From Isurus oxyrinchus (lineage: Eukaryota): DNA of 64,000 nucleotides. This document shows, piece by piece, positions 304-62,882 of the stretch. A model generated the notes under the pieces. It searched no databases and was not told the DNA's origin. It worked only from the letters and a program-made list of their open reading frames with translations. Position 1 is the first letter of the stretch, and every line of letters starts with the position of its first letter. Position numbers and translations under genes: made by a program. The DNA lies in assembly GCA_026770705.1 (NCBI GenBank), contig JANJGN010000052.1, forward strand, positions 310,001-374,000, read 5' to 3'.

Positions 304-672
304 CAGAAACGTGAAGCTGGGTTACAGGGTAATAGTTATGGCTCGGACCATTGTCAAATTCTATCCTGAAAAAATAAGGTCCTGCATCTTCCCGTCTGAT
401 GTTGTTTATAATCAGGGAACAGTCGCCATCTTTCAGGTTTCCAGACAGCCAGGTCCGATGGTGGAACCGTGGTAACTCGTGACTGTGATCCTTGGAGTGA
501 AAGGCAATGGGAGCCCAGGGAATCTGTTTCTCATTATTAAACCAGAGTCCACCTCGCGGTTGGTTTTCCAGACACGATGGATAACTGTAATGACAAGGAA
601 TCTGTACACACGAACCTTCCTGCGCTGTCACCTCTCGTGGAGTGTCACCGTTCCACTCTTGTGAGGGTTCAA
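304..672 (-). CDS. Gene A Siglec V-set exon V1 (second, internal V domain)
   Basis: TTTCTCTCCCCAG acceptor, GTAAGT donor, 369 nt, phase 1-1. Siglec motifs GSCVQIPCHYSYP and GDCSLIINNIRREDAGPYFFRIE, with the essential Arg in YFFR. Confidence 0.92.
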
Positions 673-734
673 CTGGGGAGAGAAATCTCAATATTTAACT
701 CTGGATGGTTTGTGGATCCACTAGACTCAAATTT

Positions 735-1562
735 ACAGATGAGGCTGAATTGGGGGGATGGTCAATACTGAGGAGGACTACAACAAATTATTTTGGCAGG
801 AAGAATAGAAAAACAGGATATTATTTAAATGGAGAGAGGCTGCTGAATGCAGTACAGAGGGATCTGGGTGTCCTTGTACATGAATCACAGAAAGTCAGCA
901 TTCAGGAACACCACGGAATGAGGAAGGCAAGTGGAACGTTGGCCTTTATTGCAAAGGGATGGAGTATAAAAGGAGGGAAGTCTTGCAACAGCTGCACAGG
1001 GTGAGATTATATCAGGAGCAGTGTGTACAGTTCTGGTCTCCTTACTTAGGGAGGGATAGACTCTGCATTGAAGGCAGTTCAGAGGACGTTCACTGGGCTG
1101 ATTCCTGGGATTAAAGGGTTTGTCCTGTGAGGAAATGTTGAGCAGGTTGGGCCTGTATCCATTGGAGTTTAGAAGAATGAGGGGTGACCTTATAGAAACA
1201 TATCCGATTCCGAGGGGGCTTGACAGGGTGGATGCTGGGAGGATGTTTCCCCCTCGTGGGGGAATCTAGAACCAGGGAGCACAGTTTCGGAATGAGGGCT
1301 CTCCCATTCAAGACTGAGATGAGGAGGAATTTCCTCTCTCAGAGGGGCGCTAGCCTGTGGAATTCTCTTCCCCAGACAGCAGTGGAGGCTGGGCCATTGA
1401 ATAGACTCAAGGCTGAGTGAGGCAGGTTTTTGATCGACAAGGGAGTCAAGGGTTTGGGGGACAGGCAGGAAAATGGAGTTAAGGCCACAACCAGATCAGT
1501 AGAGCAGGCTGGAGGGGCCGAATGGCCTGCTCCTGTCCCTATTTCTTATGTTCCTACATTCT
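735..1562 (+). mobile_element. CR1-type LINE 3' fragment (degenerate)
   Basis: RT C-terminal remnants (QRDLGVLVHES, LGLYPLEFRRMRGDLIETY, RRNFLSQR..LWNSLP) followed by a CR1-like tail. Confidence 0.85.
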
Positions 1563-1633
1563 TACCTTCTTAAAATATTAAAGCTGCAGAATAAACATGC
1601 AAGTGACTGACCCGCTCGACCCACCTTCCATCA

Positions 1634-2520
1634 GGGGCTGGAGGAGGTTACACAGATAGGGAGGTTTGTGGGGGCTGGAGGAGGTAACAGAGATAGGGAG
1701 GGCTGTAGATACTGGAGGAGGTTACGCAGATAGGGAGGGTGGTAGGACCTGGAGGAGGTTGCAGAGATAGGGAGGGCTATAGGGATTTGAGGAGTTTATG
1801 GAGATGGGGAGCGTGTAGGGACTGGAGGAGGCTGCAAGGGCAGAGAAGGTTTTAGGGGCAGGAGGAGTTTACAGGGATAGGAAGAGTTGTAGGGGCTGGA
1901 CGGATTGCAGAGGTAGGGAGGGTTGGAAAGGCTGGTGGAGGTTCCAGAGGTAGGGAAGGTTGCAGGGACTGGAGGAGTTTACAGAGATGGGGGAGTTTTT
2001 GGGGCAGGATGGGGTTACAGAAATAGGGAGGTTTGTAGGGGCAGGACGAGGTTAGATAGATATGGAGTGTGGCTGGGGCTGAGGGAGGCTACAGAGATAG
2101 GGAGGGTTATAATGGCTGGAGGAGGTTACAGAGATAAAGGAAACTCTTAGGGACTGGAGGAGGTTACAGAGATAGGGAGGGTTGTAGTGGGCTGGAGGAG
2201 GTTACAGAAATATGAAGGGTTGTAAGAGATGGAGCAGCTTACAGAGATAGGGAGAGGTATTCGGTCTGAAGGAGGTTGCAGAGATAGGGGAGGTTGTTAG
2301 GACTGAAGGAGGCTACAAATATCGCGAGGGTTATCGGGGCTTGAGGAGGTTAAAGAGATAGGGAGGGGTGTTGGGTCCGGAGGAGTTTGCAGTGATAGGA
2401 ATGGTTTTCGGGATTGGAAGAGAGTACTGAGATAGGAGGGTTGTAGGGACTGGAGGAGGCTCCTGAGATAGGGAATGTTGCCGTGGATGAAGAAAGAGGA
2501 GGAGATTACTGTAATAGGGA
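1634..2520. repeat. Degenerate ~37-bp minisatellite (GGGGCTGGAGGAGGTTACAGAGATAGGGAGGGTTGTA) from an L2-type LINE 3' region
   Basis: Visible periodicity. The same unit occurs at 33890-34180 and inverted at 61960-62265, always next to L2-like sequence. Confidence 0.8.
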
Positions 2521-3530
2521 GGAAAAATATTCAAAAATTGTGACATTGAGACTTTGCTTGACCAGGAGCCAGTCTCGGTCATCGAGCAGAGCGGGTGATA
2601 AGGGAACGGGACTTGGTGTGAGTAAGGACGTGGTCAGCAGTTTTGGATGGCCTCAAGTTTATGGAGTGTAGAGCGTGTGTTGGAACAGTCGAGACTGGAG
2701 GTAATGAAGGCGTGGATGAGGGTTTCAGCAGCAGATGAGCTGAGACAGGGTGACATCGTACAATGTTACGGAGGTGGAAATAGACGGTGTTAGTGAGGGC
2801 GCAGATATGAGGCCGGAAGCTCATCTCAGGATCAAATGGGACAACAAAGCTGTGAACAGATTGGCTTCAATCTCAGAGAGCTGCCAGGGAGAGGAATGGA
2901 GTTGGTAGCGAGGGAACAGAGTTTGGAATGGGGAATGAAGACAATGGCTTCAGTCTTTCCAATATTTAATTGGAGGGAATTTCTGCCCATCCAGTACTGG
3001 ATGTCGGATAAGCAGCCTGATAATTTAGCAGCAGTGGCGGAGTCGAGAGAGGTGGTGGTGAGGTAGAGCTGGGGATCCTCAGTGGACAGATGAAAACTAA
3101 AACTGTTCAGATGATGCTGCAAAGCCATTGCAAGTGATTCTCTGGCTACGATGAGATGGATAAGAATGGAGCCAGGGGAGAGCAGTTCCACCCAGCTGGA
3201 CGACAGTGGAGAGGTGTTGGAGGAGGATGGTGTGGTCGAGCGTGTCAAAGGCTGCAGACAGATCGAGAAGGACGAGGAGGGAAAGTTGACCTTTGTCACA
3301 GTCACACAGGATGCCATTTGTGACCTTGATAAGAGCTGTTTCAGCACAGTGGCTGGGGTGGGAACCTGATTGGAGGGATTCAAACATGGAGATCCGGGAA
3401 AGATGGGAACGGATTCGGGAGATGGAAACACGTTCAAGGACTTTGGAGGGGAAAGAGAGGCTGGAGATGGGACGGGGGTTTACACGGACAGTGTGAGGGG
3501 TGAAAGGTGTAGTGGGGAGGAGATACTTCA
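2520..3530 (-). mobile_element. L2-type LINE RT fragment
   Basis: RPISSLSFPSKVLER, HCAETALIKV, LVLLDLSAAFDT and LQLNIGKTEAI motifs in broken frames. Confidence 0.88.
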
Positions 3531-3751
3531 CTCAGGGGGGAGGTGTCATCACCCCTCAGCTCGGTTTACGTTACAGCTATGATGTGGATTCAATCACACA
3601 CAATAAGCTCATGGATCTGGGAGCAGAAATAGACAAATCATTAAAAATAGTGACGCTGGTTAACACGGCCAAAAAACAAGCAAATCAAACACTATTATTT
3701 CCCATTGAGTGTTGGATGTGAATTGTTGAGTAATTATAACACAGCACTTAC

Positions 3752-4129
3752 CAGAAACCTGAAGCTGGGTTACAGGGTAATAGTTATGGCTTGGACGATT
3801 GCCAAATTTTATCGTGAAAAAATAAGGTCCTGCATCTTCCCGTCTGATGTTGTTTATAATCAGGGAACAGTCGCCATCTTTCAGGTCTCCAGACAGCCGG
3901 GTCCGATGGCGGAACCGTGGTAACTCGTGACTGTGACCCTTGGAGTGAAAGGCTGTAGACCATTTAGACCATTTGTTCCGTATGTAGCTTCTCATTTTCC
4001 AGATTCCGACATGTGGTTTCTTTACCAAATCTGATGGATAACTGTAATGACATGGAATCTGTACACACGAACCTTTCTGCGCTGTCACCTCTCGTGGAGT
4101 GTCACCTTTCCACTCTTGTGACAATCCAA
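3752..4129 (-). CDS. Gene A Siglec V-set exon V2 (N-terminal V; essential Arg replaced by Thr)
   Basis: CAG acceptor, GTAAGT donor, 378 nt, phase 1-1. Open frame with Siglec Cys pattern; YFFT instead of YFFR. Confidence 0.92.
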
Positions 4130-4339
4130 CTGGGGAGAGAAATATCAATATTTAACTCTGGATGTTTTGTTGATCCACAAGACTCATTATCCACCCCCTC
4201 CATCACTCGGGCACAGTGGCTGCAGTGTGGACCATCTACAGGACACACAATGAACTCCACAAGGTATCACACCAGATGGAAGAGAATCCTGGACACAAAA
4301 GCGGAAAAGTTCATTCTACATTGGTTCATGGTCCTCAGG

Positions 4340-5180
4340 ACCCTGTTTGTGCAGAAGTCTGCTCTCCAACAGAACTGAAGTTGGGACAATGCATTTGGAA
4401 TTCCACTGTCCGGGGCATTGGGTTAACTTGCTGATTTTGTTTTGCCTAAAGCAAAATAGGCTTGCGAGAAGCCAGAAGATCCTAGGAGACACCACAGGTT
4501 GGTGACTCATTACTACGGCCATGTGAAGCCATGGTGTTCCATTGACACGGCTGAGCATTGGAGAGACAGGGCGTGGAAGGAAGGCTGAATGCACGTGGCG
4601 ATCCAGGGGGCAGGAACATGGGAAGGAGAGTTTGAAATAGTGAAAGTGGACCCTTGTGGAAGGTGTCTGAGTGAAAGTGTCATGTTGGAGGAGATTCCAA
4701 AGTGAGTTCTTGGAGAGTGGAGATTGGAAACTCTCATATGAAAGAAGCTTTTCAGTGAGACTGGTTGGCTCACAGTGTAACAAGCGTCTGGGGACAGATG
4801 AGACATAGAATTTGTTTCAAGTGGGCTCTGCCACTTGCTTTCAGAATGTGGTGTCCCTGACCACAGGTCGTCTATTGGTTTATATCGACTGTGCACTTAG
4901 TGTGAACATGAGAATATAAGATAGTTATTGTAACTTGTGTTCTACTTATGAATCTGCAAAGGTATAGATCTGGGTGAAGGTGTAATGTAATATAGTTTGT
5001 CTTTCCTAGTTTAATAAATGTTTTATTCTTTTGTTAGAAGATCATCAGATGACTCCTGTGACTCTGTTCAGTAGCCGCACTCCACATTCCTAAATAAAAA
5101 ATAAAAGTTAGGACCTATCAAGCTGAGTTCCACCCTGGGATCTGACTTGCCCAGTAGTAACATCAGCTGGGATGATAACA
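4340..5180 (+). mobile_element. LTR-like remnants (internally deleted relative to 36193-38437)
   Basis: Similar to parts of 36700-36800 and 37695-38437; contains AATAAA and ends in ..GATAACA. Confidence 0.55.
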
Positions 5181-7175
5181 CCATCCAGTCCAAGTTTCAC
5201 TTTGGCCTGTGAGCAGAACACAGCTCACACAGTTTGGCCGCAGGTGTCTCCCAGCTTTCTATCCTTGTATATCTGTTCTCATGTCCCTGTTCTAAATAAC
5301 TGAACCCACAATGTATTTACCCAATTCCGTATCAGTGGCTGGTGCCTTTATATCATTATAAAAACACAACATGGTGATCAGCGGTGGCCAAACATTCTGG
5401 CAGCAAGATTCAGTACAGGTATGACATGGTGAACAGCCTTAGATCGAACAACATGGCATGAGACGACCCTCGACGCTTTGGTCAGACCACAACAGAGACA
5501 CAGCATCAGAGAGGGTTGAAATTGCAGTGTACTGACTGCTCAGGAAACCTTTGAAGACACAGTGACGGGAAAGAGCTCAAGTAAAGAGCTGGGGAGCAGG
5601 CGGATCCCTCGTGGTGAGATTACAGCACACGGCCTGTAGGTCAGTGAGTGGGACAGTGTGTATCGCCAGGACCAGCAGCGGGTTAGCTCAGTCAGGGAAG
5701 GCGAGTGACCAGGGTGTGGGCTGGATCGATAGTGAGCGAGGGAGATTCAAACACACAAAAACCATTATAAAAATCAGCCCAGAGAAGTTAGTGATTATAA
5801 CGGGCGGCTTTGAGATTGATGAACAGCAAATTGAATAAAAAACAAAGACTCCATTACTCCGTGGTGTGTTCCTGCCACAACCCGTCTCCGTGGGCGGAGC
5901 TTCAGAAAAGCGCACAAAAGGGGCTAAAGCGACACTCATCCCAGGTCCTGTAGAAGAAGGAACGTCAAAGGAATATTGTCAGAATGTCCACGAAATTCCC
6001 CAGTTTGAACTGGGATGTAGCTGACCGACTATCTGAATTCAGAATGTTTAAACAGCGTACAGAGCTCTGGTTTCCTGATTCAGGTGTGACTGAACCAGAC
6101 GAACCACCCATAAAAATTCACCTCGCGATTGGGAATGAAGGTCTACACAGGCTGAACACGTCAGGATTAACAGCAGAAGAGCGAAAGGATCCCCAATAGA
6201 TATGGACGATATTGGAAGACAGGTTCAGAATCAGGTGAAACTCCATATTCATCAACTAGAGTTTATGTCATTTCATCAGCCTACACAATCCATAGACCAC
6301 TTCATCTGCCGATGTAGAGAAAAGGGTACGCACTGTGATTTCAAACACAGAGCCTGCAGACACAGTTGTTGAGTTGGTGATCGCATCCACTCCCATGGAA
6401 GCCTTCCAGAAAGATCTGCTAGATAAGACCAAAACCTATAGCATTGAAGAGTTACTCTAGGATGGACATAAATACGAAGTGATCCTCGCAGGTCAACGAA
6501 GCTTATAGGTCCTCAGTACAACATCAATTGTTGGCACACTCACTAGAACATCCAAACCTAGTGAGACGTGTGGAAGGTGTGGCCTTCTGCGGACACCAAG
6601 GAAATGCCCAGCTTTCCACCAATCCTGCAAGGCTTGTGGCAGAAAGGGCCATTGACAGCGGCAGGGCACTAGAGCAAAGGCTGATGCAGCTACAAAGAGC
6701 CGTGCGCTGATCCAAACAAACCCTGCACAACGGGGAACCTTCAAGCAATAAGAATGACCATCCGCTATCCCATCAGGAACATATACATGTGGTGACTGAC
6801 AAACCAGGAAATGGCGATGATGTACACGACGAGACGAGGAGCGGTGATCGATATTCCACCTCTCACACATATCCTGACGTGGCTTGCCAATAAATTGTGG
6901 ATTGTGGTCTTTATTGATCTCTCTGGGCACATCAAATAAACTGAAAATGTTCCCATAGGGGTGGGATTTTCTGGCCCCACCCACTTCCATGATTGTCCGG
7001 TCTGGCCGAAAACCAATGGATTTACGTCTGTCCCAGTCTCAGAAACTATCCCATCAGCTCAGTGCATGACATAACATTGAAATATGCAGAAAGATTCAAC
7101 AATATTGGCAGTTTCAAGGGAGCTGCAACATTACACCTGCAGGAGAATGCAAGTCTGTCAGACTCCTTGCATTAA
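5180..7175 (+). mobile_element. Gypsy-like LTR retrotransposon remnant (PBS, gag, pol pieces)
   Basis: ACAACA then TGGTGATCAGCGGTGG (tRNA-Leu-like PBS, 5372-5387). Broken gag from 5984 with a CGRCG..CPAFHQSCKACGRKGH knuckle region. Inverted integrase-like piece at ~6790-6960. Confidence 0.75.
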
Positions 7176-8546
7176 AATTAATACAATCCAACTTTGCCAT
7201 ACTATCTTGAGCCTTAAATGGCCAATAATTTCTATGCCTTCCAGGTTCATTTGCTCTCTCTTCTAATTTTGGCTGTGCATCTCTCTCTGTTGAACCTCCT
7301 CTCGGGATCCCATCCCCTGCCATATTAGTTTAAAGCCTCCTCAATTGCATCAAGGGTGTAATGTCAGTTGAAACCAGGGACAACATCGAAGAATGACAAT
7401 CCCACAGATCAATGTGAGCAATTAAAGAAACCTCCAGACAATTTTGCCACCACAAGATCTCGACATAACAGCAGATTACCTCTACGCTTTAGAGACTCAA
7501 ATATTCAACAGATCTATACACTTATGTAATTGTCAAGAAATATGAAAATGATACCAGGAACCTCTTGTTCCCTGTCCTTCTCAAAGATCCATCCCTGCAG
7601 CAGGAGCCTGAAGAGTTACTGATGCGGGGCTTAATTTATCAGATTGTAGAATGATCCGGAACAGAAGGATGCCATTTGGCCCATCGAGCCTGTGCTGGGC
7701 CTTTGAAAGATCTGTCCAATAAGTCCCACTCTAACCTCTACTCTCTCCTCCACAACCCTGCAAAATGTCTCCTTCAAGTATTTATCTAGTTCCCCTTCTG
7801 AAAGTTCCTGTTGAATCTGCTTCCACCGGCCTTTCAGGCAGTGAGTCAATGGTCTCTCTCTGAGCTGCAAAGTGCTAATGTTCTGAGAACTTTAAACTCT
7901 GCAGCAGATCAGAGACAATCATGATAACTCAGAATATTTGACAGTTTTACACACAGACAGCTTTGCCTTCCTTCTCTCTTTCAGTTATCTTGCTCCCTTA
8001 TTGAAGTATCTAGCATGGTGAGAATGGACAGGAAGTGTGACACTGAACAGCCTGTCTATTCTAGGAGCTGCTGTGTTGTCTTCATGGGAAATTCTGACAA
8101 AATCAGCAAAAGACACAAAATTTCAGGGCAATGTTATCCGAGTCCCAGCATCAGGATAGACTTCATCCCCCAGTTGGTATTCCTGATTCTCTATTCAGCT
8201 GATCGCTCCCCTGTCACTGGCTGAACTACACTGGTTCCCAGTCCAGCAATGACTCAAATTTCAAATTCTCATCATCGATTTCTTACCCCACCATCCCCCC
8301 TCTACACTCCCGATCCCTGTAACCTCCTCCAACCCTAAAACCCTCTGAGATCTCTGCTCTCCTCCAATTCTGCTGTCAGACAGGGAGTCAGTGTATATCA
8401 GTGAGCACAGGGGTGATGGGTGAATGGGACTTGGTGTGAGTTTGTACGCTGGCTCACTGCTGAATCGGTTCCCAATCACACTCAATAAGAATGATCTTTT
8501 ACAAAGACTATTAGCCATAAACTGTCCGAGCTGACGATGTTATTAC

Positions 8547-8586
8547 CTTGGAGAAGTGACAGGAGGAAGTAGGATTTCCCGATCAT
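8547..8586 (-). CDS. Gene A leader (signal peptide) exon, coding part
   Basis: ACAATG start, MIGKSYFLLSLLQ+G, GTAATA phase-1 donor. Joins VGLSQEW of the V exon. TTTCTCTTTCAG acceptor, exon start 8628. Confidence 0.88.
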
Positions 8587-9035
8587 TGTCCACTCCCAGA
8601 TATTTCATAAGCTTCTGACTCTCAAACTCTGAAAGAGAAAGGAGTTAATGAGACCTCACCTCTTGTCCGACAGCTCTCGAGAGATCAGAACTGTTTTTGG
8701 ACAATGTCTTGACAGACTAATTTGATTCTCTGTGGGATGATAGGTGCTCTGCAGAGAGTTACAAGGCTTTAAGAAAGAAAAACATTGAAGGATTTGCATT
8801 TCTATAGCACCTTTCACCACCTCAAGACGTCCCAAAGCTCATGTCTCTGCACTTCCCTCATCCCTTGAGCTAGAAAGATGTTCTGTACAACAGACTTGAG
8901 TCTCACACCCAGATCTCAATAACCAGTAGAAATCTTTCAAATGCATCAATCATTGGCTCTGTCTTTATAAAGTCACAACATCAACAAAGGACGGTGTTGG
9001 TGGTGGAAGTGAATTCCAATCGTTCCGTTACTTAC

Positions 9036-9120
9036 CCAGGACCTGTCCGACTGCTCGCCTGGGGAGGAACTGCCCACACGCTCTGCTTGGGCTGAATGAC
9101 CTCTTCCTGTGCTGCTCCCT
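9036..9120 (-). other. Gene A putative non-coding first exon (5' boundary approximate)
   Basis: CTGG|GTAAGT donor upstream of a leader exon that has an acceptor; conserved at 25777. Confidence 0.5.
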
Positions 9121-9162
9121 CTGTGTGTTTAATTAGAAAGAGTGGATGTGTCACTGTGAGAC

Positions 9163-9394: not shown

Positions 9395-12112
9395 ATCATT
9401 ACGGAGGGAGTGCTGCAATGTCAGCGGGAGTTTACTGTGGGAGTGCTGCACTATCAGAGGGTCAGTAATGTGGGAGGGCTGCACTGTCAGAGGGTCAGTA
9501 ATGTGGGAGTGCTGCAACATCAGAGCGTCAGTAATGAGGGAGTGCTGCACTATCAGAGGGTAAGTAATAAGGGAGTGCTGAACTGTCGGTGGGTCTGAAC
9601 TGAGTGAGTTCCGCACAGTTGGAGGGTCAGTATTGAGGGGGTGCCGGACTGTGGGAGGGTTAGTACTGAGGTAGAGTGGAGTGTGAGGAGATATCCTTTC
9701 ATGGCAAAGTTTAACTGGAATTTATTTAAACACAATTCTTGTACTGTGTGTTATTGCAAAAGAAAGGATTTGAGGAACTAAGTCTTGTTCCCGTAAGCCT
9801 AAAAATAATTTTCACGGATTTCAATGATTTAGCAATGAAACCTCCCTCTTTGTGCACCAGTCTTGATTGAAACAACTCGCTCAGCACAGTGGGAGGGTGA
9901 GTACTGAGGGAGTGCTGCACTGTGGGAGGGTGAGTACTGAGGGAGTGCTGCACTGTGGGAGTATGAGTACTGAGGGAGTGCTGCACTGTGGGAGAGTGAG
10001 TACTGAGGGAGTGCTGCACTGTCAGAGGTTCAGTAATGAGGGAGTGCTGCACTGTCAGAGGGTCAGTAATGTGGGAGGGCTGCACTGTCAGAGGGTCAGT
10101 AATGTGGGAGGGCTGCACTGTCAGAGGGTCAGTAATGTGGGAGGTCTGCACTGTCAGATGGTCAGTAATGAGGGAGTGCTGCACTGTCAGAGGGTCAGTA
10201 ATGTGGGAGGGCTGCACTGTCAGAGGGTCAGTAATGTGGGAGTGCTGCACTGTCGGAGGGTCAGTACTGAGTGAGTTCCGCACAGTTGGAGGGTCAGTAT
10301 TGAGGGGGTGCCGGACTGTGGGAGGGTTAGTACTGAGGTAGAGCGGAGCGTGAGGAGATATCCTTTCATGGCAAAGTTTAACTGGAATTTATTTAAACAG
10401 AATTCTTGTACTGTGTGTTATTGCAAAAGAAAGGATTTGAGGAACTAAGTCTTGTTCCCGTAAGCCTAAAAATAATTTTCACGGATTTCAATGATTTAGC
10501 AATGAAACCTCCCTCTTTGTGCACCAGTCTTGATTGAAACAACTCACACAGCACTGTGGGAGGGTGAGTACTGAGGGAGTGCTGCACTGTGGGAGGGTGA
10601 GTACTGAGGGAGTGCTGCACTGTGGGAGTGTGAGTACTGAGGGAGTGCTGCACTTCGGGAGAGTGAGTACTGAGGGAGTGCTGCACTGTGGGAGGGTGAG
10701 TACTGAGGGGTTGCTGCACTGTGGGAGTGTGAGTACTGAGGGAGTGCTGCACTGTGGTTTGTGAGTACTGAGGGAGTGCTGCACTGTGGGAGGGTGAGTA
10801 CTGAGGGAGTGCTGCACTGTCAGAGGATCAGTAATGAGGGAGTGCTGCACTGTCAGAGGGTCAGTAATGTGGGAGGGCTGCACTGTCAGAGGGTCAGTAA
10901 TGTGGGAGGTCTGCACTGTCACGTGGTCAGTAATGAGGGAGTGCTGCACTGTCAGAGGGTCAGTAATGTGGGAGCGCTGCACTGTCAGAGGGTCAGTAAT
11001 GTGGGAGGTCTGCACTGTCAGATGGTCAGTAATGAGGGATTGCTGCACTGTCAGAGGGTCAGTAATGTGGGAGTGCTGCACTGTCAGAGGGTCAGTAATG
11101 TGGGAGTGCTGCACTGTCGGAGGGTCTGTACTGAGTGATTTCCGCACAGTTGGAGGGTCAGTATTGAGGGGGTGCCGGACTGTGGGAGGGTTAGTACTGA
11201 GGTAGAGCGGAGAGATATCCTTTCATGGCAAAGTTTAACTGGAATTTATTTAAACACAATTCTTGTACTGTGTGTTATTGCAAAAGAAAGGATTTGAGGA
11301 ACTAAGTTTTGTTCCCGTAAGCCTAAAAATAATTTTCACGATTTCAATGATTTAGCATTGAAACCTCCCTCTTTGTGCACCAGTCTTGATTGAAACAACT
11401 CGCACAGCACAGTGGGAGGGTGAGTACTGAGGGAGGGCTGCACTGTGGGAGGGTGAGTCCTGAGGGAGTGCTGCACAGTGGGAGGGTGAGAATTGAGGGA
11501 GTGCTGCACTGTGGGAGGGTGAGTACTGAGGGAGGGCTGCACTGTGGGAGGGTGAGTCCTGAGGGAGTACTGCACTGTGGGAGGGTGAGAATTGAGGGAG
11601 TACTGCACTGTGGGAGGGTGAGTCCTGAGGGAGTGCTGCACTGTGGGAGGGTGAGAATTGAGGGAGTACTGCACTGTGGGAGCGTCAGTACTGAGGGAGT
11701 GCTGAACTGTCGGAAGGTCAGTAGTGAGGGAGGGATACAGTGTCAGAGGGTCAGTACTGAGGGAATGCTGCACTGTCAGTTTGTCAGCACTGTGGGAGTG
11801 CTGCACAGTCAGAAGGTGTGTACCGAGGGAGTGCCGAACTGTCGGAAGGTCAGTAGTGAGGGAGGGATACAGTATCAGAGGATCAGTACTGAGGTAATGC
11901 TGCACTGTGGGTGAGTGAGTACTGAGGGAGTGCTGCACTGTCAGATTGTCATCCATGAGGGAGTGCTGCACTGTCAGAAGGTCAGTGCTGACGGGGTGCT
12001 GCACTTGAAAAGGGTCAATAATGAGGTAGTGCAGCACTGTCAGAGGGACAGTAATGAGGGAGCGCTGCACTGACGGAGGGTCAGCACTGAGGAAACGCTG
12101 CACTGTCAGTTC
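9395..12112. repeat. 33-bp SINE-derived minisatellite interleaved with three copies of a ~220-bp block
   Basis: Unit GTCAGTACTGAGGGAGTGCTGCACTGTCAGAGG. The block GATATCCTTTCATGGCAAAG... starts near 9690, 10357 and 11214. Confidence 0.92.
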
Positions 12113-12465
12113 TGAGCGTGGTCTGCACTGTTCTAAGTGCATTCTAGGCACTGCCCAAGGTTCCGCCTGATGTCCGTGTAACAACAACATCATGTACACG
12201 TCGAGAATATTTCCCACTGTTCGGTGCAACAAGACAGCTTTGGAATGGCACCACCACTGGCAGGAGTGTGAAACTACAATGTGACATGTTTACATGGGAA
12301 ATTTCTATTATAAAGCTGGGCACAGCAATTCGTATGATAGAACAAATGTGACAACATGAAGTAATGTCTTTGAGCCAAAAATTTGGCTTCAAAATAAGAA
12401 TTTTAATCTATAAATATCTACAGAACAGGCTGAGCATTTTAATCACTTGTGTTAATCAATGTAAT

Positions 12466-12808
12466 TTTATTCATAACCCAAATGCTTCTTACAATCTATC
12501 GCAGCATGAAAAAGGTGCAGCATTCAGAAAGCACATTCCAATCAGAGAACAGAGTTTAGCAACGTCACATTTCTGTTCATTCCTATTTGACCATGTTGGC
12601 TGCACACAGCCAGACAATGCCGTGGTTATGATGTGTCCACACAGCAGGACTGGGGTGCACCAGGTATAAGGAAAAGTTTCAGCTTGCTGAGGAGAAGAAG
12701 GAGAATCTCTCGTTCCAGGATTCTCTCCGTACATTAAGAAGCAGGCATGCCGATGTTTCATTGCACTCTGTCTGCTGATGGGAGTCCGCTTGGAAATTGT
12801 TGTTTGTG
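12466..12808 (-). other. Gene B putative terminal/3'UTR exon with polyA signal
   Basis: TTCTTTCCATCAG acceptor; AATAAA at 12471-12466. Homologous to gene D sequence just past its stop (55100-55225). Confidence 0.5.
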
Positions 12809-12829
12809 CTGATGGAAAGAATAAGCTTT

Positions 12830-13430
12830 TCATAAATCGAGGGATTGAGTAAAAACACAGGGAGGTTATGCTGAACATTTATAAAGCTCTGGTTAGGTCA
12901 CAACTAGAGTATTGTGTCCAGTTCTGGTCTCTTCACTTTGGGAAGGAAGTGAGGGTCCTTGAGAGGGTGGGGAGGAGATTGAGCAGAATGGGTCCAGGGA
13001 TGAGGGATTTTAGCTACAAGGTTGGGTTGGAGAAGCTGGGGTTGTTCTCCTTGGAGCAAAGGAGATTGAGGGGGGATCTGATCGAGGTGTACAAGATGAT
13101 GATGGGTTTAGATAAGGCAGACAAAGAGAAGCTGTTGCCATTAGCTGATGGTACAAGGACTGGGGGACACAGATTGAAGGATTTGGACAGGGGGTGATGT
13201 GAGAAGGAACTTTTTTACACAGCGAGTGGTAATGAGCTGGAACTCGCTGCCTACGAGGATGGTGGAAGTGGAGACGATGAACGATTTCAAAAGGAAATTG
13301 GATGGACACATGAGGGGAAATAAACTCACAGGGATACGGGGATAGAGCGGGGGAAATGGGACTGAGTGGATTGCTCTACAGAGAGGCAGCATGGACTCAA
13401 TGGGCTGAATGGGCTCCTACTGTGCTGGAA
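12830..13430 (+). mobile_element. CR1-type LINE 3' fragment
   Basis: YKALVRSQLEYCVQFWS and LGLFSLEQRRLRGDLIEVYK; paralog at 28275-28880. Confidence 0.9.
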
Positions 13431-37117: not shown

Positions 37118-37121
37118 CTGT

Positions 37122-38437: not shown

Positions 38438-38439
38438 CC

Positions 38440-50589: not shown

Positions 50590-51410
50590 CGGGGGTCAGG
50601 GGCTGTGGGTGGGTCGGTCATGGTGGTGGGGGTGGGGGAGGGGGGTGGTAGGGATGGTTGGGGAGGGGGGTGGGTTGGTCGGACATGGTGGTGGGGGTGG
50701 GGGTGTGGATGGTGGGGGTGGAGGTGGGGAAGAGGGTGGGGGTCTGGATGTGGGTGTCGGTGGGAGTGTGGGTGGGGCTGGGGGTGGGGGTGGGGGTGGT
50801 GGGGGTGGGGGTGGGGGTTGTGGGGGTGGTAGCATGGGTGATGGTGGGGGTGGAGGTGGTAGGGGTGGGGGAGGGGGTGGGGGTGGTGATGGGGTGTGGG
50901 TGTGGGTGGGGGCGGTGGGGGTGGGGGCAGGGGAGGGGGTGGTGGTGGGGGTGGTGGGGATGGGGGTGCGGTGGGGGTGGGGATGTTGGGGGTGTGGGTG
51001 GGGGAGGGGGTGGTGGGGGTGGTGGGGGTGCATGTGGGGGTGGGTGTGGGGGTGGGGGTGTGGGGTTGGGGAGGGGTAGGGTGTGGGGTTGGGGGGGGTG
51101 GGGGTGGGGGAGGGAGTGGTGAGGGTGGGGGAGGGGGAGGGTTTGGAGGTGGTGGTGGGGGTGGGGGAGGGGGTGGGTTTGGGGGTGGGTGTGGGGGAGC
51201 TGGTGGGGTGGTGGTGGGGGAGGGTGTGGGTGCTGGGCGTGGGGGTGGGCGTGGGGGTGTGGGGGTGGGGGTGGGGTGTGGGGGTGGGGGTGGGGTGTGG
51301 GTGGTGGGCGTGGGGGTGGGTGAGGTGGAGGGGGTGGGGGTATGGGGGAGGGGGTGGTGGGGATGGGGGTGTGGGGGTGGGGTTGGTTGTGGGGGTGGGG
51401 AGGGGGTGAT
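50590..51410. repeat. G-rich (GGGGGT-like) low-complexity tract
   Basis: About 800 bp dominated by G-runs. Confidence 0.95.
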
Positions 51411-55251: not shown

Positions 55252-55500
55252 TCAGTTTTTCTGGAACCTGATCTGTGCGTATTCCGTGTCCTCGCTCCTG
55301 TGCACAGTCCTGTCACCGCTGGGCAGCTTTGAAAAGTTGATGTTGGCGTAGAGAATCTCGTCGGGTTTGTCAGGATTCCCATGTCCAACATCGCCTCCTA
55401 CTGGACCTTCAGAGAGATCCCGGGGAGCTGGGGTCTCCCCCTCACTAGTTGTGTCTCTGGTTGTGTCCCGGGGCTCAGTAATCAGCACGTTCTGTTTACC
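55252..55500 (-). CDS. Gene D distal terminal exon: ITIM (ILYANI) plus ITSM (TEYAQI)
   Basis: TCTCTGTAG acceptor, phase 0: GKQNVLITEP..DEILYANINF..EDTEYAQIRFQKN-stop. Confidence 0.9.
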   Translation of the reverse strand, partial: GKQNVLITEPRDTTRDTTSEGETPAPRDLSEGPVGGDVGHGNPDKPDEILYANINFSKLPSGDRTVHRSEDTEYAQIRFQKN

Positions 55501-55574
55501 CTACAGAGAAATGGAAACAGAAGACATCCTCACATCAATTACTGGCACTGATAGGGTTAAATTATTGTGCAGAC

Positions 55575-56090
55575 TTGTTTAATTCTCTGTCTCCTATCGG
55601 ATAAAAGGCACCACCTATGGCAGTGCAGCACTCCCTCAGTACTGACCCTCCAACAGTGCAGCACTCCCTCAGTGCTGACCCTCCGACAATACAGCGCTCC
55701 CTCAGTACTGACCCATCGACAGTGCAGCACTCCCTCAGTACTGACCCTCTGTCAGTGCAGCACTCCCTCAGTACTGACCCTCCAACAGTGCAGCACTCCC
55801 TCAGTGCTGACCCTCCGACAATACAGCGCTCCCTTAGTACTGACCCTCTGTCAGTGCAGCACTCCCTCAGTACTGACCCTCCAACAGTGCAGCACTCCCT
55901 CAGTACTGTCCCTCTGACAGTGCAGCACTCCCTCAGTACTGACCCTCCGACAGTGCAGCACTCCTTCAGTACTGACCCGCTGTCAGTCCCGCACTCCCTC
56001 GGTAATGGCTCTGGTGAGTGACGGCTTGGATTCTGCACTCAGGTGCCTGGTGTGAGGCTCAATAACATGAACCTTGTAATCAGAGAGAGA
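55575..56090 (-). mobile_element. SINE with internal 33-bp tandem expansion
   Basis: The array is flanked by SINE-like sequence on both sides; a shorter paralog lies at ~58780-59030. Confidence 0.75.
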
Positions 56091-57199
56091 GGATGAGAGA
56101 GAGAGATAGAGATGAAGGGACAGAGACAGAGTGTTATTAATCTATTAATGTTTGTATTATAAATGCAAACTGTCTTTTTAAACAGAGGTTTAGTCTGTGT
56201 GTGTGTCTGTGTGTATTTAAATTGGATTAAAGACAGCCAGTCTGTGTGCTTTGATGTATAGTAGTTTTGAGATGCAAACAAAGAGGTAAAGTGGTAATTT
56301 GCATTTTTAAATAAAACATTCAAAGTCTGAGAGTGAAATCTTAAACCAATCAACGTTTATATTACTAATAAAATTGATACGATGAAAGGGGATTTATTAT
56401 TGGAAGAGATGGAGTTCAAAGGTCCTGATGATACATTGCGAATTTACCTTCAAACAGAAGCCATAAGACCATAAGACATAGGATGAGAAATTAGACCATT
56501 CGGTCCATCGAGTCTGCTCCACCATTCATACATGGCTGATATGTTTCACAAACCCCATTCTCCCACCTTCTCTCCTAACCATTGATCCCCTGACCAATCA
56601 AGAGCCCATCAATCTCCATCTTCTTCACACTCAAGAGCTGGGTATAACTTGAGCAGTTTTGTGTGTGCAGAGCAGAGGCTTGTAACATCAAAGCAGCTGT
56701 AATACTTCACCTGTCTGCAAAGGAACCAAAGTGAAAGGAACCTCATTTGGAATTTGTGAGGTGAAAATGCTTTGCCTAGTGTCTGCTTAAAGTCTATGGG
56801 TTGTCTTGGAGGAGATTAGTTTGAGAATTTGTTATAAAGTTATGATAATACTAGTTTGTAGCCATGTGCATATGTTTAACTTGTGAAAATTAATAAATGT
56901 CTCATTTAGATTGATATAAAATCATCTTGAGAACTGGTGGTCTTATTCCTGAATTTAGAGCTGCATCTCAAACATTCCACTGGGAAATATAGGTTACGAC
57001 AGCTGTTTAAAGTTTCCCTCTGGGATTTTAAGCAACAGCCTTTACCAGTTGCTGTGTCATAACAGAGAGACAGCATGATACTGAACCATTGCTGACCCCA
57101 CAGGTACAAATCAGTGGGTAACTGGGCTGGGAATCTGGGACATATGTTGTCTACACACTGAGATTGAAGCTTTGGAGTGAGTGTAAACAGCTCCTGTAC

Positions 57200-57281
57200 C
57201 TGGTGCTTCACAGAGAGTGGACTGGGGGTCAATGCAATGTCACTGGTCCCTGAAACTCTCTCCTCCATCGCTGTCTTTCTC
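57200..57281 (-). CDS. Gene D cytoplasmic exon 1, distal copy
   Basis: CAG acceptor, CAG|GTACAG donor, 82 nt, phase 2-0: RKTAMEERVSGTSDIALTPSPLSVKHQ. Confidence 0.82.
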
Positions 57282-57411
57282 CTGCAATAACAAAATATCA
57301 CACTGTGGTTATCATATAGCAGAGAGTCAGTGCAGCACAGACACAGAGCCCACTGTAACCTTACACCAATGACTGGACTCTCTCTTTAAATCACCTCTGC
57401 ACAAAGCACAG

Positions 57412-57880
57412 AATCAAGACGCTCGACACCATCCAGGACAAAGCAGCCCGATTGATCCATACCACATCCACCACATTAAACATTCACTCCCTCCACCATG
57501 AACACACAGTGGCAGCAGTGTGTGTACCATCTACAAGATGCACTGCAGCAACTCAGCAAGGCTCCTTCAACAGCACCTTCCAAATACGCGACCTCTACCA
57601 TCCAGAAGGACAAGGACAGCAGACACATGGGAACACCACCACCTGGAAGTTCCCCTCCAAGTCACTCACCATCCTGACTTGGAAATATATCACCGTTCCT
57701 TCACTGTCGCTGGGTTAACATCCTGGAATTCCCTCTCTAACAGCACTGTGGGTGTACCTACACCACATGGACTGCAGCGGGTGAAGAAGGCAGCTCACCA
57801 CCACCTTCTCAAGGGCAGTTAGAGATTGGCATCAATGCGGACATCATCAGTGACAGCCACATTCGATGTAAGAATTAAAA
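57412..57880 (+). mobile_element. LINE 3' fragment (paralog at ~59747-60217)
   Basis: LDTIQDKA..IYKMHCSNS..SWNSL..KKAAHHHLLKG; same family as 52975-53998. Confidence 0.8.
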
Positions 57881-57898
57881 ACCTCACAGCTCAATGTA

Positions 57899-57904
57899 TT
57901 TATT
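57899..57904 (-). terminator. Candidate polyA signal for the proximal tail of gene D
   Basis: Minus-strand AATAAA ~530 nt after the stop at 58433, next to the duplication junction. Confidence 0.45.
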
Positions 57905-58432
57905 GTGACCCTGCTGCACACACGCCCTGTCGAAGGAACCTCTGTGGTTCCATTGTTAATCGAAGCAGATCAGAGTTACTGCAACAACTTGCATTTATAT
58001 AGCACCTTCAATGTAGCAAAATGTCCCAAGGCTCATCCGGGGATTGTTAGTCACATTTCACCTGACTCTGAGGCACATGAGGAGATATTAGGGACAGGAG
58101 ACCAACTGCTGAGTCAACAAAGTCAGTTATTAACGGGCATCTTAAAGGAGGAGCTGGAGATAGAGAATGAGAGACAGACACAGAAAGAAAGAGAGAGACA
58201 GAGAGGAAGAGAGAGAGAGAAAGAGAGAGAGACAGTGAATCTCACTCCCCAATGGCTCAGCATCCAGTCCTCTCTGGAGAAGCATTTCATTCCAAACCAC
58301 ACCAACCGTAGCCCAATTCCATCCCTTCCTCCCTCTCTCCCCCTCTCCCCCAGTGGGTTGTTTCCTGTTCCCAGGAATCTCAATCCCTACCCGCACACCC
58401 ACATTTCCTCACTCCCACTCCCCATTTCTCAT

Positions 58433-58681
58433 TCAGTTATGCTCAAACCTGATCTGTGCGTATTCCGTCTCCTCTTCCCTGTGGACAGACCCATCACCAC
58501 TGGACACCCTCAAAACTTGGGGATTGGCGTAGAGAAACTCTTCAGGTTTGCCGGGGTTCCCAAGTCCAGCATCGCCTCCCACTGCACCTTCAGAGGGACC
58601 CCGGGGAGCTGGGGTCTCCCCCTCGCTAGTTGTGTCTCTGGTTGTGTTCCGGGGCTCAGTAATCAGCACGTTCTGTTTACC
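58433..58681 (-). CDS. Gene D proximal terminal exon: degenerate ITIM (FLYANP) plus ITSM (TEYAQI)
   Basis: TAG acceptor, phase 0, 249 nt open to the stop, same length as the distal copy. Confidence 0.85.
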   Translation of the reverse strand, partial: GKQNVLITEPRNTTRDTTSEGETPAPRGPSEGAVGGDAGLGNPGKPEEFLYANPQVLRVSSGDGSVHREEETEYAQIRFEHN

Positions 58682-59534
58682 CTACAGAGAAATGGAAACA
58701 GAAGACATCCTCACATTATTTACTGGCACTGATAGGGTTAAATTATTGTGCAGCTTCGTTAATGTCAGTCGTGTCTCAGTGGGTTTAACTCTCTCTCCCA
58801 TGTCTTATGAAAGAAACCACCTATGGCAGTGCAGTGCTCCCTCAGGACTGACCCTCCAACAGTGCAGCACATCCTCAATAGTGACCCTCTGTCAGTCTCG
58901 CACTCCCTCAGTACTGACCCGCTGTCAGTCTCGCACTCCCTCGGTAATGGCTCTGGTGAGTGACGGCTTGGATTCTTCACTCAAGTTTCTGGTGTGAAGC
59001 TCATTAACGTGCACCTTGTAATCAGAGAGAGGATGAGAGAGAGAGAAAGAGAGAGAAAGAAAGGGAGGTTGAGATAGAGAGAGAGACTGGAATTTGAGAG
59101 GTGAAAATGCCTGGAATCTGCTTAAAGACTATGGGTTGTCTTAGAGGAGATTAGTTTGAGAATTTGTTAAAAAGTTATGATAATACTAGTTTGTAGCCAT
59201 GTGCATATGTTTAACTTGTGTAAATTAATATATGTCTCATTTAGTTTGATATAAACCCATCTCGAGAACTGGTGGTCTTATTCCTGAATTTAGAGATGCA
59301 TCTCAAACATTCCACTGGGAAATATAGTTTATGACAGTTGTTTAAAGTTTCCCTCTGGGATTTTAAACAACAGCCTTTACCAGTTGCTGTGTCATAACAG
59401 AGAGACAGCATGATACTGAACCATTGCTGACTCCACAGGTACAAATCAGTGGGTAACAGGGCTGGGAATCTGGGACATGTGTTGTCTACACACTGAGATT
59501 GAAGCTTTGGAGTGAGTGTAAACAGCTCCTGTAC

Positions 59535-59616
59535 CTGGTGCTTCACAGAGAGTGGACTGGGGGTCAATGCAATGTCACTGGTCCCCGAAACTCTCTCCTC
59601 CATCGCTGTCTTTCTC
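59535..59616 (-). CDS. Gene D cytoplasmic exon 1, proximal copy
   Basis: 82 nt, phase 2-0; same peptide as 57200-57281. Confidence 0.85.
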
Positions 59617-60339
59617 CTGAAATAACACAATATCACACTGTGGTTATCATATAGCAGAGAGTCAGTGCAGCACAGACACAGAGCCCAGTGTAACCTTACA
59701 CCAATGACTGGACTGTCACTTTCAATCACTTCTGCACAAAGCACAGAATCAAGAAGCTTGACACCATCCAGGACAAAGCAGCCCGATTGATCTACACCCC
59801 ATCCCCCACATTAAACATTTACTCCCTCCACCATGAACACACAGTGGCAGCAGTGTGTGTACCATCTACAAGATGCACTGCGGCAACTCAGCAAGGCTCC
59901 TTCAACAGCACCTTCCAAACCCACGACCTCTACCATCTAGAAGGACAAGGGCAGCAGACACATGGGAACACCACCACCTGGAAGTTCCCCTCCAAGTCAC
60001 TCACCATCCTGACTTGGAAATATATCACCGTTCCTTCACTGTCGCTGGGTCAAAATCCTGGAACTCCCTCTCTAACAGCACTGTGGGTGTACCTACACCA
60101 CATGGACTGCAGCGGGTCAAGAAGGCATCTCACTACCTCATTCTCAAGGGGCAATTAGGGAATGGGCAATTAGTATTGGCCACGCCAGTGACAGTCACAT
60201 TCGATGAAAGAATTTAAAATCTCACAGCTCAGGAGGAAGCCACTCAGCCCATCGTGCCTGTGCTGGCCCTTTGTAAAAACTGTCCAATTAATCCTAAACA
60301 AATGTTTATATTAAAATCAAGTTAAATCTTCAGACTTAC

Positions 60340-60436
60340 TTTCTCACACAGATGAAGATGAAGATTCCAGCCAGGAAAACACTCAACATGATCCCAGCCG
60401 TGAACAATCCTACTGTCCATTTACTGGAGTCTCTAC
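60340..60436 (-). CDS. Gene D TM exon (uncharged)
   Basis: TTTTTACAG acceptor, GTAAGT donor, phase 1-2: GRDSSKWTVGLFTAGIMLSVFLAGIFIFICVR(K). Confidence 0.9.
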
Positions 60437-60986: not shown

Positions 60987-61356
60987 AAATGTTTATATAA
61001 AATATTTTATCGTTTGGGAGGAGAACCTGAGTATTGCTGAGAAAGGACATTTTGTCAAAGCTTTCTGTCTTGCACCCAATGAAGCAGCTTATCTGGGGGA
61101 GAGGGTTCCAGATTTCCACTCCCCTTTGTGTGAAGAAGTGCTTCCTGACATCACCCACTGAACGGCCTGGCTCCAATTTGACCAAGAGTTGCCATTGTCA
61201 CATGAGGTCAGGCGATTCAAAGCTTGGTCAAAGGGGTCAATTGTAAAGAGCATCTTAGAGGAGGTAGAGAGAGAGGTGGAGAGGTTGAGGGAGGGAATTC
61301 TCGAGTTTAGGGATCAATCCAGCTGAGTGGAGATCGATCCTGAGCGAGTCTCTCAC

Positions 61357-61650
61357 CTTTGACCCACAGATACATCTTGAACATGGCTTCCCCGTGTGGG
61401 TTTTGAACCGAGCAGGATGCCATCACTCCCCCCTCATCCTGGGGTCTCATCAGGGTGAGGGAACCAGTCACCAGATGCCCATCTCTGACCTGCCACGACA
61501 CAAAACCTCCGTGTGTTTGGTTACCACTGATTTTGGCACTGGGCAGGTGCCAGGTGAGGTCTCCGGGTGGGTTGGAGTTGGCCACACAGACGCAGGTGAC
61601 CCCCTCTGACCTCCGAGTGCACTCCAACTGCTGGGAAATCTCCGGCTTAT
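61357..61650 (-). CDS. Gene D membrane-proximal Ig exon (MAG D5 / CD33-related type)
   Basis: 294 nt, phase 1-1: YKPEISQQLECTRRSEGVTCVCVANSNP, with the C..CxC pattern of Siglec membrane-proximal domains. Confidence 0.9.
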
Positions 61651-61779
61651 CTGAGGAGGGAAGGACAACAATGAGACAACTTCATAGCAAAGTTAGAGCG
61701 TAAGATAGAATCTTAACACTGAAACACTCATTCCCTCCTTTGTTACCTCCGCACTCGACTATCCCAACACTCTCCTGCC

Positions 61780-62480
61780 CGACCTCCCATCTTCCACTCT
61801 CCGGAAACATCAGCTCATCCCAAACTCTGCTGTCCCCATGTCCTAACTCACACCGAGTCCCGTTCACACATCACTCCCTGTTGGTCACTGAGCTACACTG
61901 GCTCCCGGTCCGACAATGCCACAATTTTAAAATTTACATCGTTTCAAATTCCTCCTTACTCCCTCCCTATCTCTGTTACCTCCTCCAGCATCTACAACCC
62001 TCCCTATCTCTGTAACCTCCTCCAGCCCCTTCAACCCTCCCTATCTCTGTAACCTCCTCCAGACCCCACAACCCTCCCTATCTCTGTAACCTCCTCCAGC
62101 CCCTACACACCTCCCTATCTCTGTTACCTCCTCCAGCATCTACAACCCTCCCTATCTCTGTTACCTCCTCCAGCCCCTACAACCCTCCCTATCTCTGTAA
62201 CCTCCTCCAGCCATCACAACCCTCCCTATCTCTGTAACCTCCTCCAGCCTCTACAACCCTCCGAGATCTCTGTGTTCCTCCAATTCCGGCCTCTTGACCA
62301 TCCCCCGATTCCTATCGCTCCACCATTGGCGGCCGTGCCTTCAGCTGCCTGGGCCCCGAGCTCTAGAATTCCCACCGTAAACCTCTCCATGTCTATCTCT
62401 CTCCTCATTTCAGACACTCCTTAAAATCTGGCCTCTTTCTCTGAGCTTTCAGTCCCTGTTCTGATATCTCCTTATGTATC
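61780..62480 (+). mobile_element. L2-type LINE 3' region with 37-bp tandem expansion (61960-62265)
   Basis: LHWLPV and PPYLCYLLQ motifs; unit CCCTCCCTATCTCTGTAACCTCCTCCAGCCCCTACAA. Confidence 0.8.
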
Positions 62481-62606
62481 TCGGAGAGGCGCAGGGTGAA
62501 AAAAGCAGGGAGGTGATGCTAGTTATGCTAAACCACAGCAAGGAAGCTGCCCTCAGACAGAAAGTGTTTGAGTTTTAAGCAGAGACAGGGGGAGTAAAAT
62601 GCTTAC

Positions 62607-62882
62607 ATTGTACGTTCAGGTGGGTGATGTTGGAGATGCTGTTACCCATTGGGTTCCTCGCTGTGCAGTAGAAACCTGCATCATTCTCCCGTGTTACAGG
62701 AGTGAAGGAGAGAGTGCGGCTACTTGTGTTTAACTGGGTGCTGGTGTTCCCCTCGATCCTGAACCAGGTGTAATGAGATATCGGTGGGACACTTTCACTG
62801 GAGCAGGTTAATGTGATATTGCTTCCCTCTCTTATCCCACCTGAGGATCTGCTGATGGACACCATCGTCTCCTGTGGGGGAT
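62607..62882 (-). CDS. Gene D C2-type Ig exon (CD22/sialoadhesin-like)
   Basis: 276 nt, phase 1-1: PPQETMV..REGSNITLTCSSESVPP..YTWF..DAGFYCTARNPMG..LNVQ. Confidence 0.92.

Follow-up and report, generated by a model that had tools for sequence, protein, structure and literature searches.

Siglec-like receptor genes of activating and inhibitory type in a tandem cluster of the shark Isurus oxyrinchus

Do sharks carry paired Siglec receptors? Paired Siglecs are a textbook case of a host-pathogen arms race and have been studied almost only in mammals. The question was raised by a stretch of 64,000 nucleotides of the Isurus oxyrinchus genome (assembly GCA_026770705.1, contig JANJGN010000052.1, positions 310,001 to 374,000; hereafter the window, in which all coordinates are given), whose initial annotation, made from the letters alone, had proposed an independently expanded system of paired Siglecs in a probable chondrichthyan. 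We consider it probable, at roughly 0.8, that the window covers part of a cluster of Siglec-like genes for type I receptors, arranged in tandem and shaped by segmental duplication; that members of activating type and of inhibitory type occur together in it is supported by the evidence described below.

Exon structure of the cluster

Every coding feature of the window was found on the minus strand. Three leader exons (MIGKSYFLLSLLQ followed by gt, with a phase-1 donor), starting at 41842, 25326 and 8586, define genes C (leader at 41803-41842), B (25287-25326) and A (8547-8586), and the 3' half of a fourth gene, D, enters from beyond 64000. The leader of gene C matches the N-termini of shark gene models, and those of B and A are of the same type. 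Besides these leaders, the minus strand holds six V-set exons, three C2 exons and two transmembrane (TM) exons with an arginine within the membrane segment (Arg-TM exons). All borders of the predicted exons are canonical and in phase, apart from that of the gene D TM exon, which has one extra base. All elements of the four same-strand genes proposed in the initial annotation were recovered on this strand and where it had placed them. Self-BLAST revealed the segmental duplication, with 1-8866 paralogous to 31445-42121 (89-97% identity), 11602-15823 paralogous to 27051-31179 (91-93%) and a shorter V-C2 copy at 22868-24480. Between paralogues, identity is 98.5-99% in the C2 and TM exons and 93.5% in the block around them.

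Homology searches were all run with single exons and not with joined spliced models. The six V exons (V35, V32, V24, V17, V4 and V0) share an acceptor of the form ...ctccccag/TTGGA (slashes mark exon borders) and a TCTG/gtaagt donor, in phase 1, and match the Pfam families V-set and Ig_CD22, the latter describing the CD22-type first immunoglobulin (Ig) domain. Searched against solved structures (PDB, phmmer), V32 retrieved Siglec-5, Siglec-7, Siglec-8, CD33, MAG, Siglec-10 and sialoadhesin with E values of 1e-15 to 1e-11 (2e-13 for MAG), and Siglec-15 and CD22 more weakly. The canonical sugar-contacting Arg of strand F is in register (YFFRIE in V32, YFFRVE in Siglec-5) and is kept in V0, V24, V32, V35 and the V17 pseudo-exon, with Thr in V4. 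The three Siglec cysteines, two in strand B and one in strand E, are likewise aligned (GSCVQIPC and DCSLII against LCVLVPC and NCSLSI of Siglec-5), and five of the six V exons, as well as most orthologues, keep the YFFR/YLFR motif together with the Siglec cysteine pattern. The three C2 exons read DFTDKP...LTVQ between canonical phase-1 splice sites and contain the C-x5-C motif (SCTFNTTC); an alignment of the C2 exon with MAG and CD33 places it at their domain 2, and its paralogous copies match Pfam C2-set_2. V-set homology, strand-F Arg and cysteine pattern thus all place these exons in the Siglec (I-type lectin) family. Every V exon, internal ones included, retains a leader-type acceptor and the signal-peptide end VGLSQ or VEPSQ. 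Gene models of other elasmobranchs, which are automatic RefSeq models and are designated here by P numbers, chain two to four V domains (P0105, P0115 and P0131), and the V exons of the window may be used either in tandem or as alternatives. Identity between distal and proximal V exons is only about 80%, and the C-C' region varies in length between them.

Gene C (41842-28904) has an open frame in every exon and intact splice sites. Its distal V exon, V35 (35415-35789; YLFR, with the Arg kept; Pfam V-set 2.5e-13 and Ig_CD22), has its splice sites and falls in the clade of distal V domains. The proximal one, V32 (31748-32116; YFFRIEF), matches Siglec-5, Siglec-7, Siglec-8, CD33 and MAG structures at E 1e-15 to 1e-13, and its donor is spliced in the contigs described below. 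The C2 exon with the MAG/CD33 domain-2 alignment (30638-30934) follows, and then the Arg-TM exon, whose coding part (DSGGEILHVILILGIRAVIFLVAVVITIAGVCVWERQTVKGSRQPV and the stop, 28904-29043) is 93% identical to the C-terminus of P0004. The C2 exon of gene C also reads AGKC (30884, A on the plus strand) where both paralogues, and all contigs of the four sequencing runs considered below, read AGKR; this is either an extra cysteine or a private allele.

The Arg-TM exons of genes C and B have a ctctag/ acceptor in phase 1 and both read, with the phase-1 base supplied by the C2 donor, DSGGEILHVILILGIRAVIFLVAVVITI(A/T)GVCVW and ERQTVKGSRQ(P/T)V before the stop. The segment ILILGIRAVIF lies at 28985-29017 in C and at 13630-13662 in B, placing the Arg in the outer third of the predicted helix, and the tail of 12 residues is devoid of Tyr, as the initial annotation had described for both genes. 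The two copies differ at 2 of 137 coding bases and match their orthologues at 89-93%. A basic TM residue with a short, motif-free tail is the build of the activating member of paired receptors. The idea that a further exon bypasses the stop was rejected, since the orthologous models P0004, P0018, P0019 and P0088 likewise terminate with the ...RQ(P/T)V residue; in P0005 and P0008, the models of Scyliorhinus canicula (S. canicula), the end comes a few residues sooner (...WERRTV).

Gene B is a composite. An intact leader, V24 (24056-24424, with the canonical Arg) and a first C2 exon, C2_23 (22900-23196; Pfam C2-set_2), are followed by 2.2 kb of a 33-bp satellite, a long interspersed nuclear element (LINE) inserted just upstream of V17 (reverse transcriptase-like open reading frames, ORFs, at 17303-19647), the dead V17 itself (16895-17259; 4 nt deleted, stops in frame and both strand-B Cys lost), a second, intact C2 exon (15283-15579; Pfam C2-set_2) and the Arg-TM exon, near-identical to the C copy (coding part and stop, 13549-13688). 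The satellite array directly adjoins C2_23, at the place where one would look for a TM exon belonging to this copy. Gene A comprises, in the window, the distal V exon V4 (3752-4129) and the proximal V0 (304-672, canonical Arg), after which it exits past the window start; its TM exon therefore lies outside the window, as had been anticipated.

A decayed exon for the rear half of a third Ig domain (CVAENEHG type) persists in both C2-to-Arg-TM introns, at 30163-30330 in C and 14810-14980 in B, and is 92-98% identical to Carcharodon P0113; the C copy (of the CVAENDHG type; 92% over 50 aa by tblastn) has stops and a frameshift upstream. In all three copies, reading through the C2 donor (22865-22900, 15227-15283 and 30582-30638, minus strand) meets a stop after at least 11 codons (GKYGHLSFYIS in the exemplary reading). 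The RefSeq models P0006, P0011 and P0015 end by such read-through, and soluble receptor forms are possible by this route.

Of gene D, a relative with five Ig domains, the window contains the 3' half, which has an uncharged TM and a tail of two duplicated cassettes. Its orthologue is Carcharodon P0113, a 794-residue protein named 'MAG-like' with the order V-C2-Ig-Ig-Ig-TM-cyt-tail-cyt-tail, where cyt stands for a cytoplasmic exon. An Ig exon (PPQETMVSISRSSGG..., 62607-62882; Pfam Ig_3 1.8e-12) agrees almost throughout with residues 359-449 of P0113, although the tblastn piece covering it (P0113 306-451, 69%) extends into non-exon sequence. The membrane-proximal Ig exon (61357-61650) is 96% identical to P0113 by tblastn, and the uncharged TM exon (WTVGLFTAGIMLSVFLAGIFIFIC, 60339-60436) is 88% identical. 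Cytoplasmic exon A (RKTAMEERVSGTSDIALTPSPLSVKHQ, 59535-59616; 82 nt, phase-2 acceptor) precedes tail cassette 1 (58433-58681; FLYANP, TEYAQI and a stop), and its duplicate, exon B (57200-57281), precedes tail cassette 2 (55252-55500; ILYANI, TEYAQI and a stop), the latter 93% identical to the C-terminus of P0113. This tandem duplication of cytoplasmic exon plus tail exon occupies 55252-59616 of the minus strand. P0113 reads ...TEYAQIR/RKTAMEE..., which implies that the internal donor of cassette 1 is used there, and both cassettes stand in one tail with four tyrosine motifs. The same donor is present in the window (ATCAG/gtttga, after 58449), leading in the orthologue to exon B. The motifs of the tail are, in order, FLYANP (not a canonical immunoreceptor tyrosine-based inhibitory motif, ITIM), TEYAQI, the canonical ITIM ILYANI and again TEYAQI, which resembles an immunoreceptor tyrosine-based switch motif (ITSM). 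The uncharged TM and Tyr motifs initially ascribed to gene D were accordingly found, and they give it the build of an inhibitory member of paired receptors despite a one-base misfit between its TM and cytoplasmic exons.

Spliced contigs, relatives and V-domain phylogeny

The initial annotation had singled out transcripts joining V and C2 exons to the Arg-TM exons as a check on its proposal. Four public sequencing runs were compared with 28700-34699 of the window, in the form of Logan contigs and not reads, and with their RNA nature only guessed. Contigs of X1, X6 and X7 contained both the V-to-C2 joint (30934 to 31748) and the C2-to-Arg-TM joint (29043 to 30638), and the CT..AC ends of the two intervals correspond to GT..AG on the minus strand. 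Both joints coincide exactly with the borders predicted from the sequence, so that the joints looked for were indeed seen. A further contig, from X4, joins 29043 to 30163, that is, the donor of the decayed third Ig exon to the Arg-TM exon; together with the decayed exon itself, this suggests a longer relative as the source of the short activating genes.

The assignment of these contigs to single genes is narrower. At the sites diagnostic of gene C (31842, 31844 and 30884), every contig has the other letter, and the V-to-C2 contig of X7 matches V24 and C2_23 of gene B at the diagnostic sites. The TM contigs, with about 97% identity to either TM copy, carry no paralogue assignment, and more paralogues lie outside the window. 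Since gene C letters are absent from the contigs and gene B letters are present in X7, use of the V-to-C2-to-Arg-TM junctions is shown for the family and probably for gene B, and not for gene C specifically.

Word searches returned elasmobranch proteins plus one frog protein among the matches listed, the closest species among them being Carcharodon carcharias and Cetorhinus maximus, with up to 97% identity in V32 (97% to the V domain of Carcharodon P0018), which marks the window as DNA of a lamniform-like shark. One of the searches had elasmobranch hits alone among its best 120. Automatic names such as Siglec-5 to Siglec-14, CD33-like or MAG-like have been given to over 200 models, which come from more than 20 sharks, rays and skates. 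The Arg-TM exon is joined to C2 as predicted in 6 models from three other species, namely Carcharodon P0004 (V-C2-Arg-TM), P0018 and P0019 (V-V-C2-Arg-TM, with the junction LHVS/VGLSQEW), S. canicula P0005 and P0008, and Scyliorhinus torazame (S. torazame) P0088. ILILGIRAVIF is unchanged in P0004, P0005, P0008 and P0088 and reads IQILGIRAVIF in P0018 and P0019, leaving LGIRAVIF common to all six, and a stingray model (P0093) has a related short-tailed TM, ISLAVRGVLF. Judged from these models, the Arg-TM module is conserved across shark orders. Inhibitory models sharing the ectodomain build of Arg-TM models were also found (P0123, P0077 and P0021).

When the V32 exon was searched exhaustively, 1317 relatives were retrieved at E <= 1e-3, and the named samples among them included gar and catfish 'MAG-like' proteins, an osteoglossiform 'Siglec-6', turtle and frog proteins and mammalian CD33-related Siglecs. 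In a maximum-likelihood tree built quickly from individual V domains (109 rows and only 122 columns, with long-branch warnings), all 76 elasmobranch V domains formed one clade apart from mammalian CD33-related Siglecs, with a support of 95 in the Shimodaira-Hasegawa-like approximate likelihood ratio test (SH-aLRT). In the same 122 columns this clade was sister (SH-aLRT 92) to a frog and mammal CD33-related group, with the bony-fish group outside; a long-branch 'MAG-like' protein of Mustelus also fell outside the elasmobranch clade. Arg-TM and ITIM receptors were interleaved inside the clade, S. canicula P0005 (Arg-TM) and P0025 (ITIM) being sisters at 97. V32, V24 and V0 grouped with the Carcharodon Arg-TM models, with Cetorhinus P0021 (ITIM) and with Carcharodon P0109, whose tail, unscored in the tree, reads LLYANP...AEYAQI and is of the cassette-1 type. 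Of the phylogeny against CD33-related Siglecs, MAG, CD22, Siglec-1 and Siglec-15 that had been named as a further check, the separation from CD33-related Siglecs was obtained, and curated references for the other four were not in the set. A single elasmobranch clade with interleaved Arg-TM and ITIM members fits an expansion and a pairing independent of Siglec-5/14 and Siglec-11/16, and both the monophyly of the elasmobranch V domains and this independence are likely on the V-domain alignment.

A more far-reaching reading is that a CD33/MAG-type lineage with a dedicated and conserved activating Arg-TM module was present in the elasmobranch ancestor, perhaps even at the base of jawed vertebrates, that it is sister to the tetrapod CD33-related Siglecs and that it uses an adaptor other than FcRgamma. 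We put this forward tentatively, at somewhat under even odds.

Pairing and its alternatives

By analogy with mammalian systems, we infer that the receptors of this cluster may bind sialic acid, pair with adaptors, recruit phosphatases and act in opposition. Arg-TM receptors of the B and C type would signal only through pairing of their Arg with an Asp in the TM segment of an adaptor bearing an ITAM (immunoreceptor tyrosine-based activation motif). This adaptor would be DAP12-, CD3zeta- or FcRgamma-like, and the Arg-TM forms would need it for surface expression as well as for signalling. The D-type tail, once phosphorylated, would recruit SHP-type SH2 phosphatases. For an Arg, the outer third of the TM helix is the FcRgamma-type position; a partner resembling DAP12 or CD3zeta is just as possible.

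Several observations weigh against reading the window as part of a paired Siglec-like cluster, beginning with the limits on the contigs given above (their nature, the missing gene C letters and the unassigned TM copies). Gene D, with its V exon outside the window and a five-Ig ectodomain unlike those of B and C, is not the ectodomain-matched partner of either in the window. Matched pairs are visible only in orthologues, namely Carcharodon P0123 (V-V-C2, uncharged TM and double tail), which has the ectodomain build of P0018 and P0019, and S. canicula P0025 against P0005. The initial proposal of independently expanded chondrichthyan paired Siglecs thus held as regards V-domain identity, origin, coexistence of the two types and a separate clade, and fell short in the matching of D to B or C. 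The frame of gene D is also disturbed. All orthologues read ICVRK/RKTAMEE, which requires a TM exon ending in ...GTGAGAAA/gt in phase 2 and implies a length of 97 nt, whereas the TM exon in the window has 98 nt and ends in ...GTGAGAAAG/gtaagt (60339-60345). Canonical splicing of D as assembled yields EKDSDGGESFGDQ and then a stop, and only skipping 59535-59616 restores the frame; the extra base could reflect either an error of the assembly or a genuine frameshift. In gene B, the satellite, the LINE and the dead V17 lie inside the gene, so that an Arg-TM product would need C2_23 to be spliced across about 9 kb. V4 of gene A carries Thr in place of the canonical Arg (YFFTIKF, 3813-3824, minus strand). 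As regards the adaptor, no gene for one was seen in the window, and a survey of 2014 did not find FcRgamma in cartilaginous fish (PMC4016189).

The V4 substitution also bears on what these receptors recognize. A paired family of the Ig superfamily could be Siglec-like by descent alone, keeping the Siglec fold with no sialic-acid lectin activity and binding protein or other ligands. The divergence and the C-C' length changes of the distal V domains agree with this, and the receptors are known here from sequence alone. Siglecs without the Arg exist in mammals. We nevertheless regard the absence of lectin activity as unlikely, given that the YFFR/YLFR motif and the Siglec cysteines persist in all V exons but one and in most orthologues, and that the best structure matches, at E 1e-15, are sialic-acid-binding Siglecs. 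A different doubt concerns whether the Arg-TM units of the window are live at all, or are decaying relics, the transcripts coming from paralogues elsewhere. The B region, with its dead V exon, LINE and satellite insertions and decayed third Ig exon, has the look of such a relic, and gene C has its diagnostic letters in no contig and an odd Arg-to-Cys change in its C2 exon. Yet all exons of gene C are open with intact splice sites, the V24-to-C2_23 contig matches gene B exactly at the diagnostic sites, and the TM exons differ at just 2 of 137 bases and match orthologues at 89-93%, which makes decay of these units distinctly unlikely.

Quite improbable, in our estimate, is that the three forms (activating, inhibitory and soluble) come not from separate paired genes but, as isoforms, from common transcription units with alternative 3' exons. 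Such isoforms do occur among the gene models: Cetorhinus P0015 and P0021 share a V-V head, the former ending in C2 and read-through and the latter in a TM and an ITIM tail, and one Mobula locus gives isoforms named Siglec-12, Siglec-16 and CD33-like; the read-through of C2, moreover, reaches its stop after 11-12 codons. In the window, however, no uncharged TM or ITIM exon lies between the B or C leader and the next leader, and the tail exons of D lie upstream of the C leader.

Read as part of a paired Siglec-like cluster, the window resembles the mammalian Siglec-5/14 and Siglec-11/16 systems in having linked genes with Siglec V-set heads, an ITIM/ITSM-like member and a stub-tailed member with a basic TM residue (Arg in Siglec-14), and differs from them in that five Ig domains in the ITIM gene of the window contrast with two or three in its Arg-TM genes. 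Because the shark genes form an elasmobranch-only clade, pairing would have arisen separately from that of Siglec-5/14 and Siglec-11/16. Tandem V-V heads recall Siglec-12, after which NCBI has named several shark models; unlike in Siglec-12, every shark V exon keeps the leader-type acceptor and VGLSQ, and other elasmobranch models chain up to four V domains. MAG (Siglec-4) is approached by the D orthologue, with its five Ig domains and its MAG-like name, and by the V exon match given above, but D carries ITIM/ITSM-like motifs in its tails and is a member of a multigene expansion. The opposition of an ITIM tail to a charged TM with an adaptor, tandem duplication and fast turnover are also features of PILRalpha/beta, of teleost NITR/LITR and of KIR/LILR, whose V domains are of other families; PILR matches V32 only at E 1e-3.

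Surroundings and significance of the cluster

The spacer of 13 kb between the last tail exon of D (55252) and the leader of C (41842) contains three runs of N (44292-44560, 48141-48363 and 48581-48773) amid (TG)n-like and G-rich low-complexity DNA, with an 800-bp TGGGGG-type G-rich array near them at 50621-51408. We rejected the possibility that these gaps interrupt a gene; they are intergenic, and no exon or frame described here crosses one. No family exon was detected in this spacer by tblastn with family proteins, the N stretches being unreadable. In each unit, introns and spacers contain arrays of a 33-bp minisatellite and a 37-bp repeat (9884-12106, 20477-22688, 26136-26840, 42453-42782 and 55621-56004; 1633-2474 and 61961-62262), and the 33-bp minisatellite is open in several frames and so produces long false ORFs. 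Some 450 bp upstream of the B and A leaders lies an open, orphan cytoplasmic exon (RGSSTGRGHSAQAERVGSSSPGEQSDRSW, at 25777-25863 and 9036-9122, minus strand) of the type seen in the YENC/VYGNV-tailed models P0022 and P0024; tail exons matching it are absent from the 64-kb window.

The notion that the system is undescribed holds for the literature searched, in which no paper on shark or cartilaginous-fish Siglecs was found, but not for RefSeq, which already names the models counted above. The importance of the finding is limited in that mammals are known to have this design and automatic annotation already shows the genes, unremarked, in many sharks and rays. In a previous study of fish Siglecs, fish genomes were described as being without CD33-related inhibitory Siglecs (PMC7226832). 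An ancient elasmobranch lineage of the CD33/MAG type would, if true, overturn this published absence of CD33-related, ITIM-bearing Siglecs in fishes, and would provide a second, independent origin of Siglec pairing to set beside the primate pairs. A large expansion in elasmobranchs that includes ITIM as well as Arg-TM members would be an independent replicate of the evolution of pairing, one that offers natural variants (a lost canonical Arg, V heads in tandem, tails that are doubled), and that raises the question of which ITAM adaptor sharks use, given that FcRgamma was reported missing in 2014.

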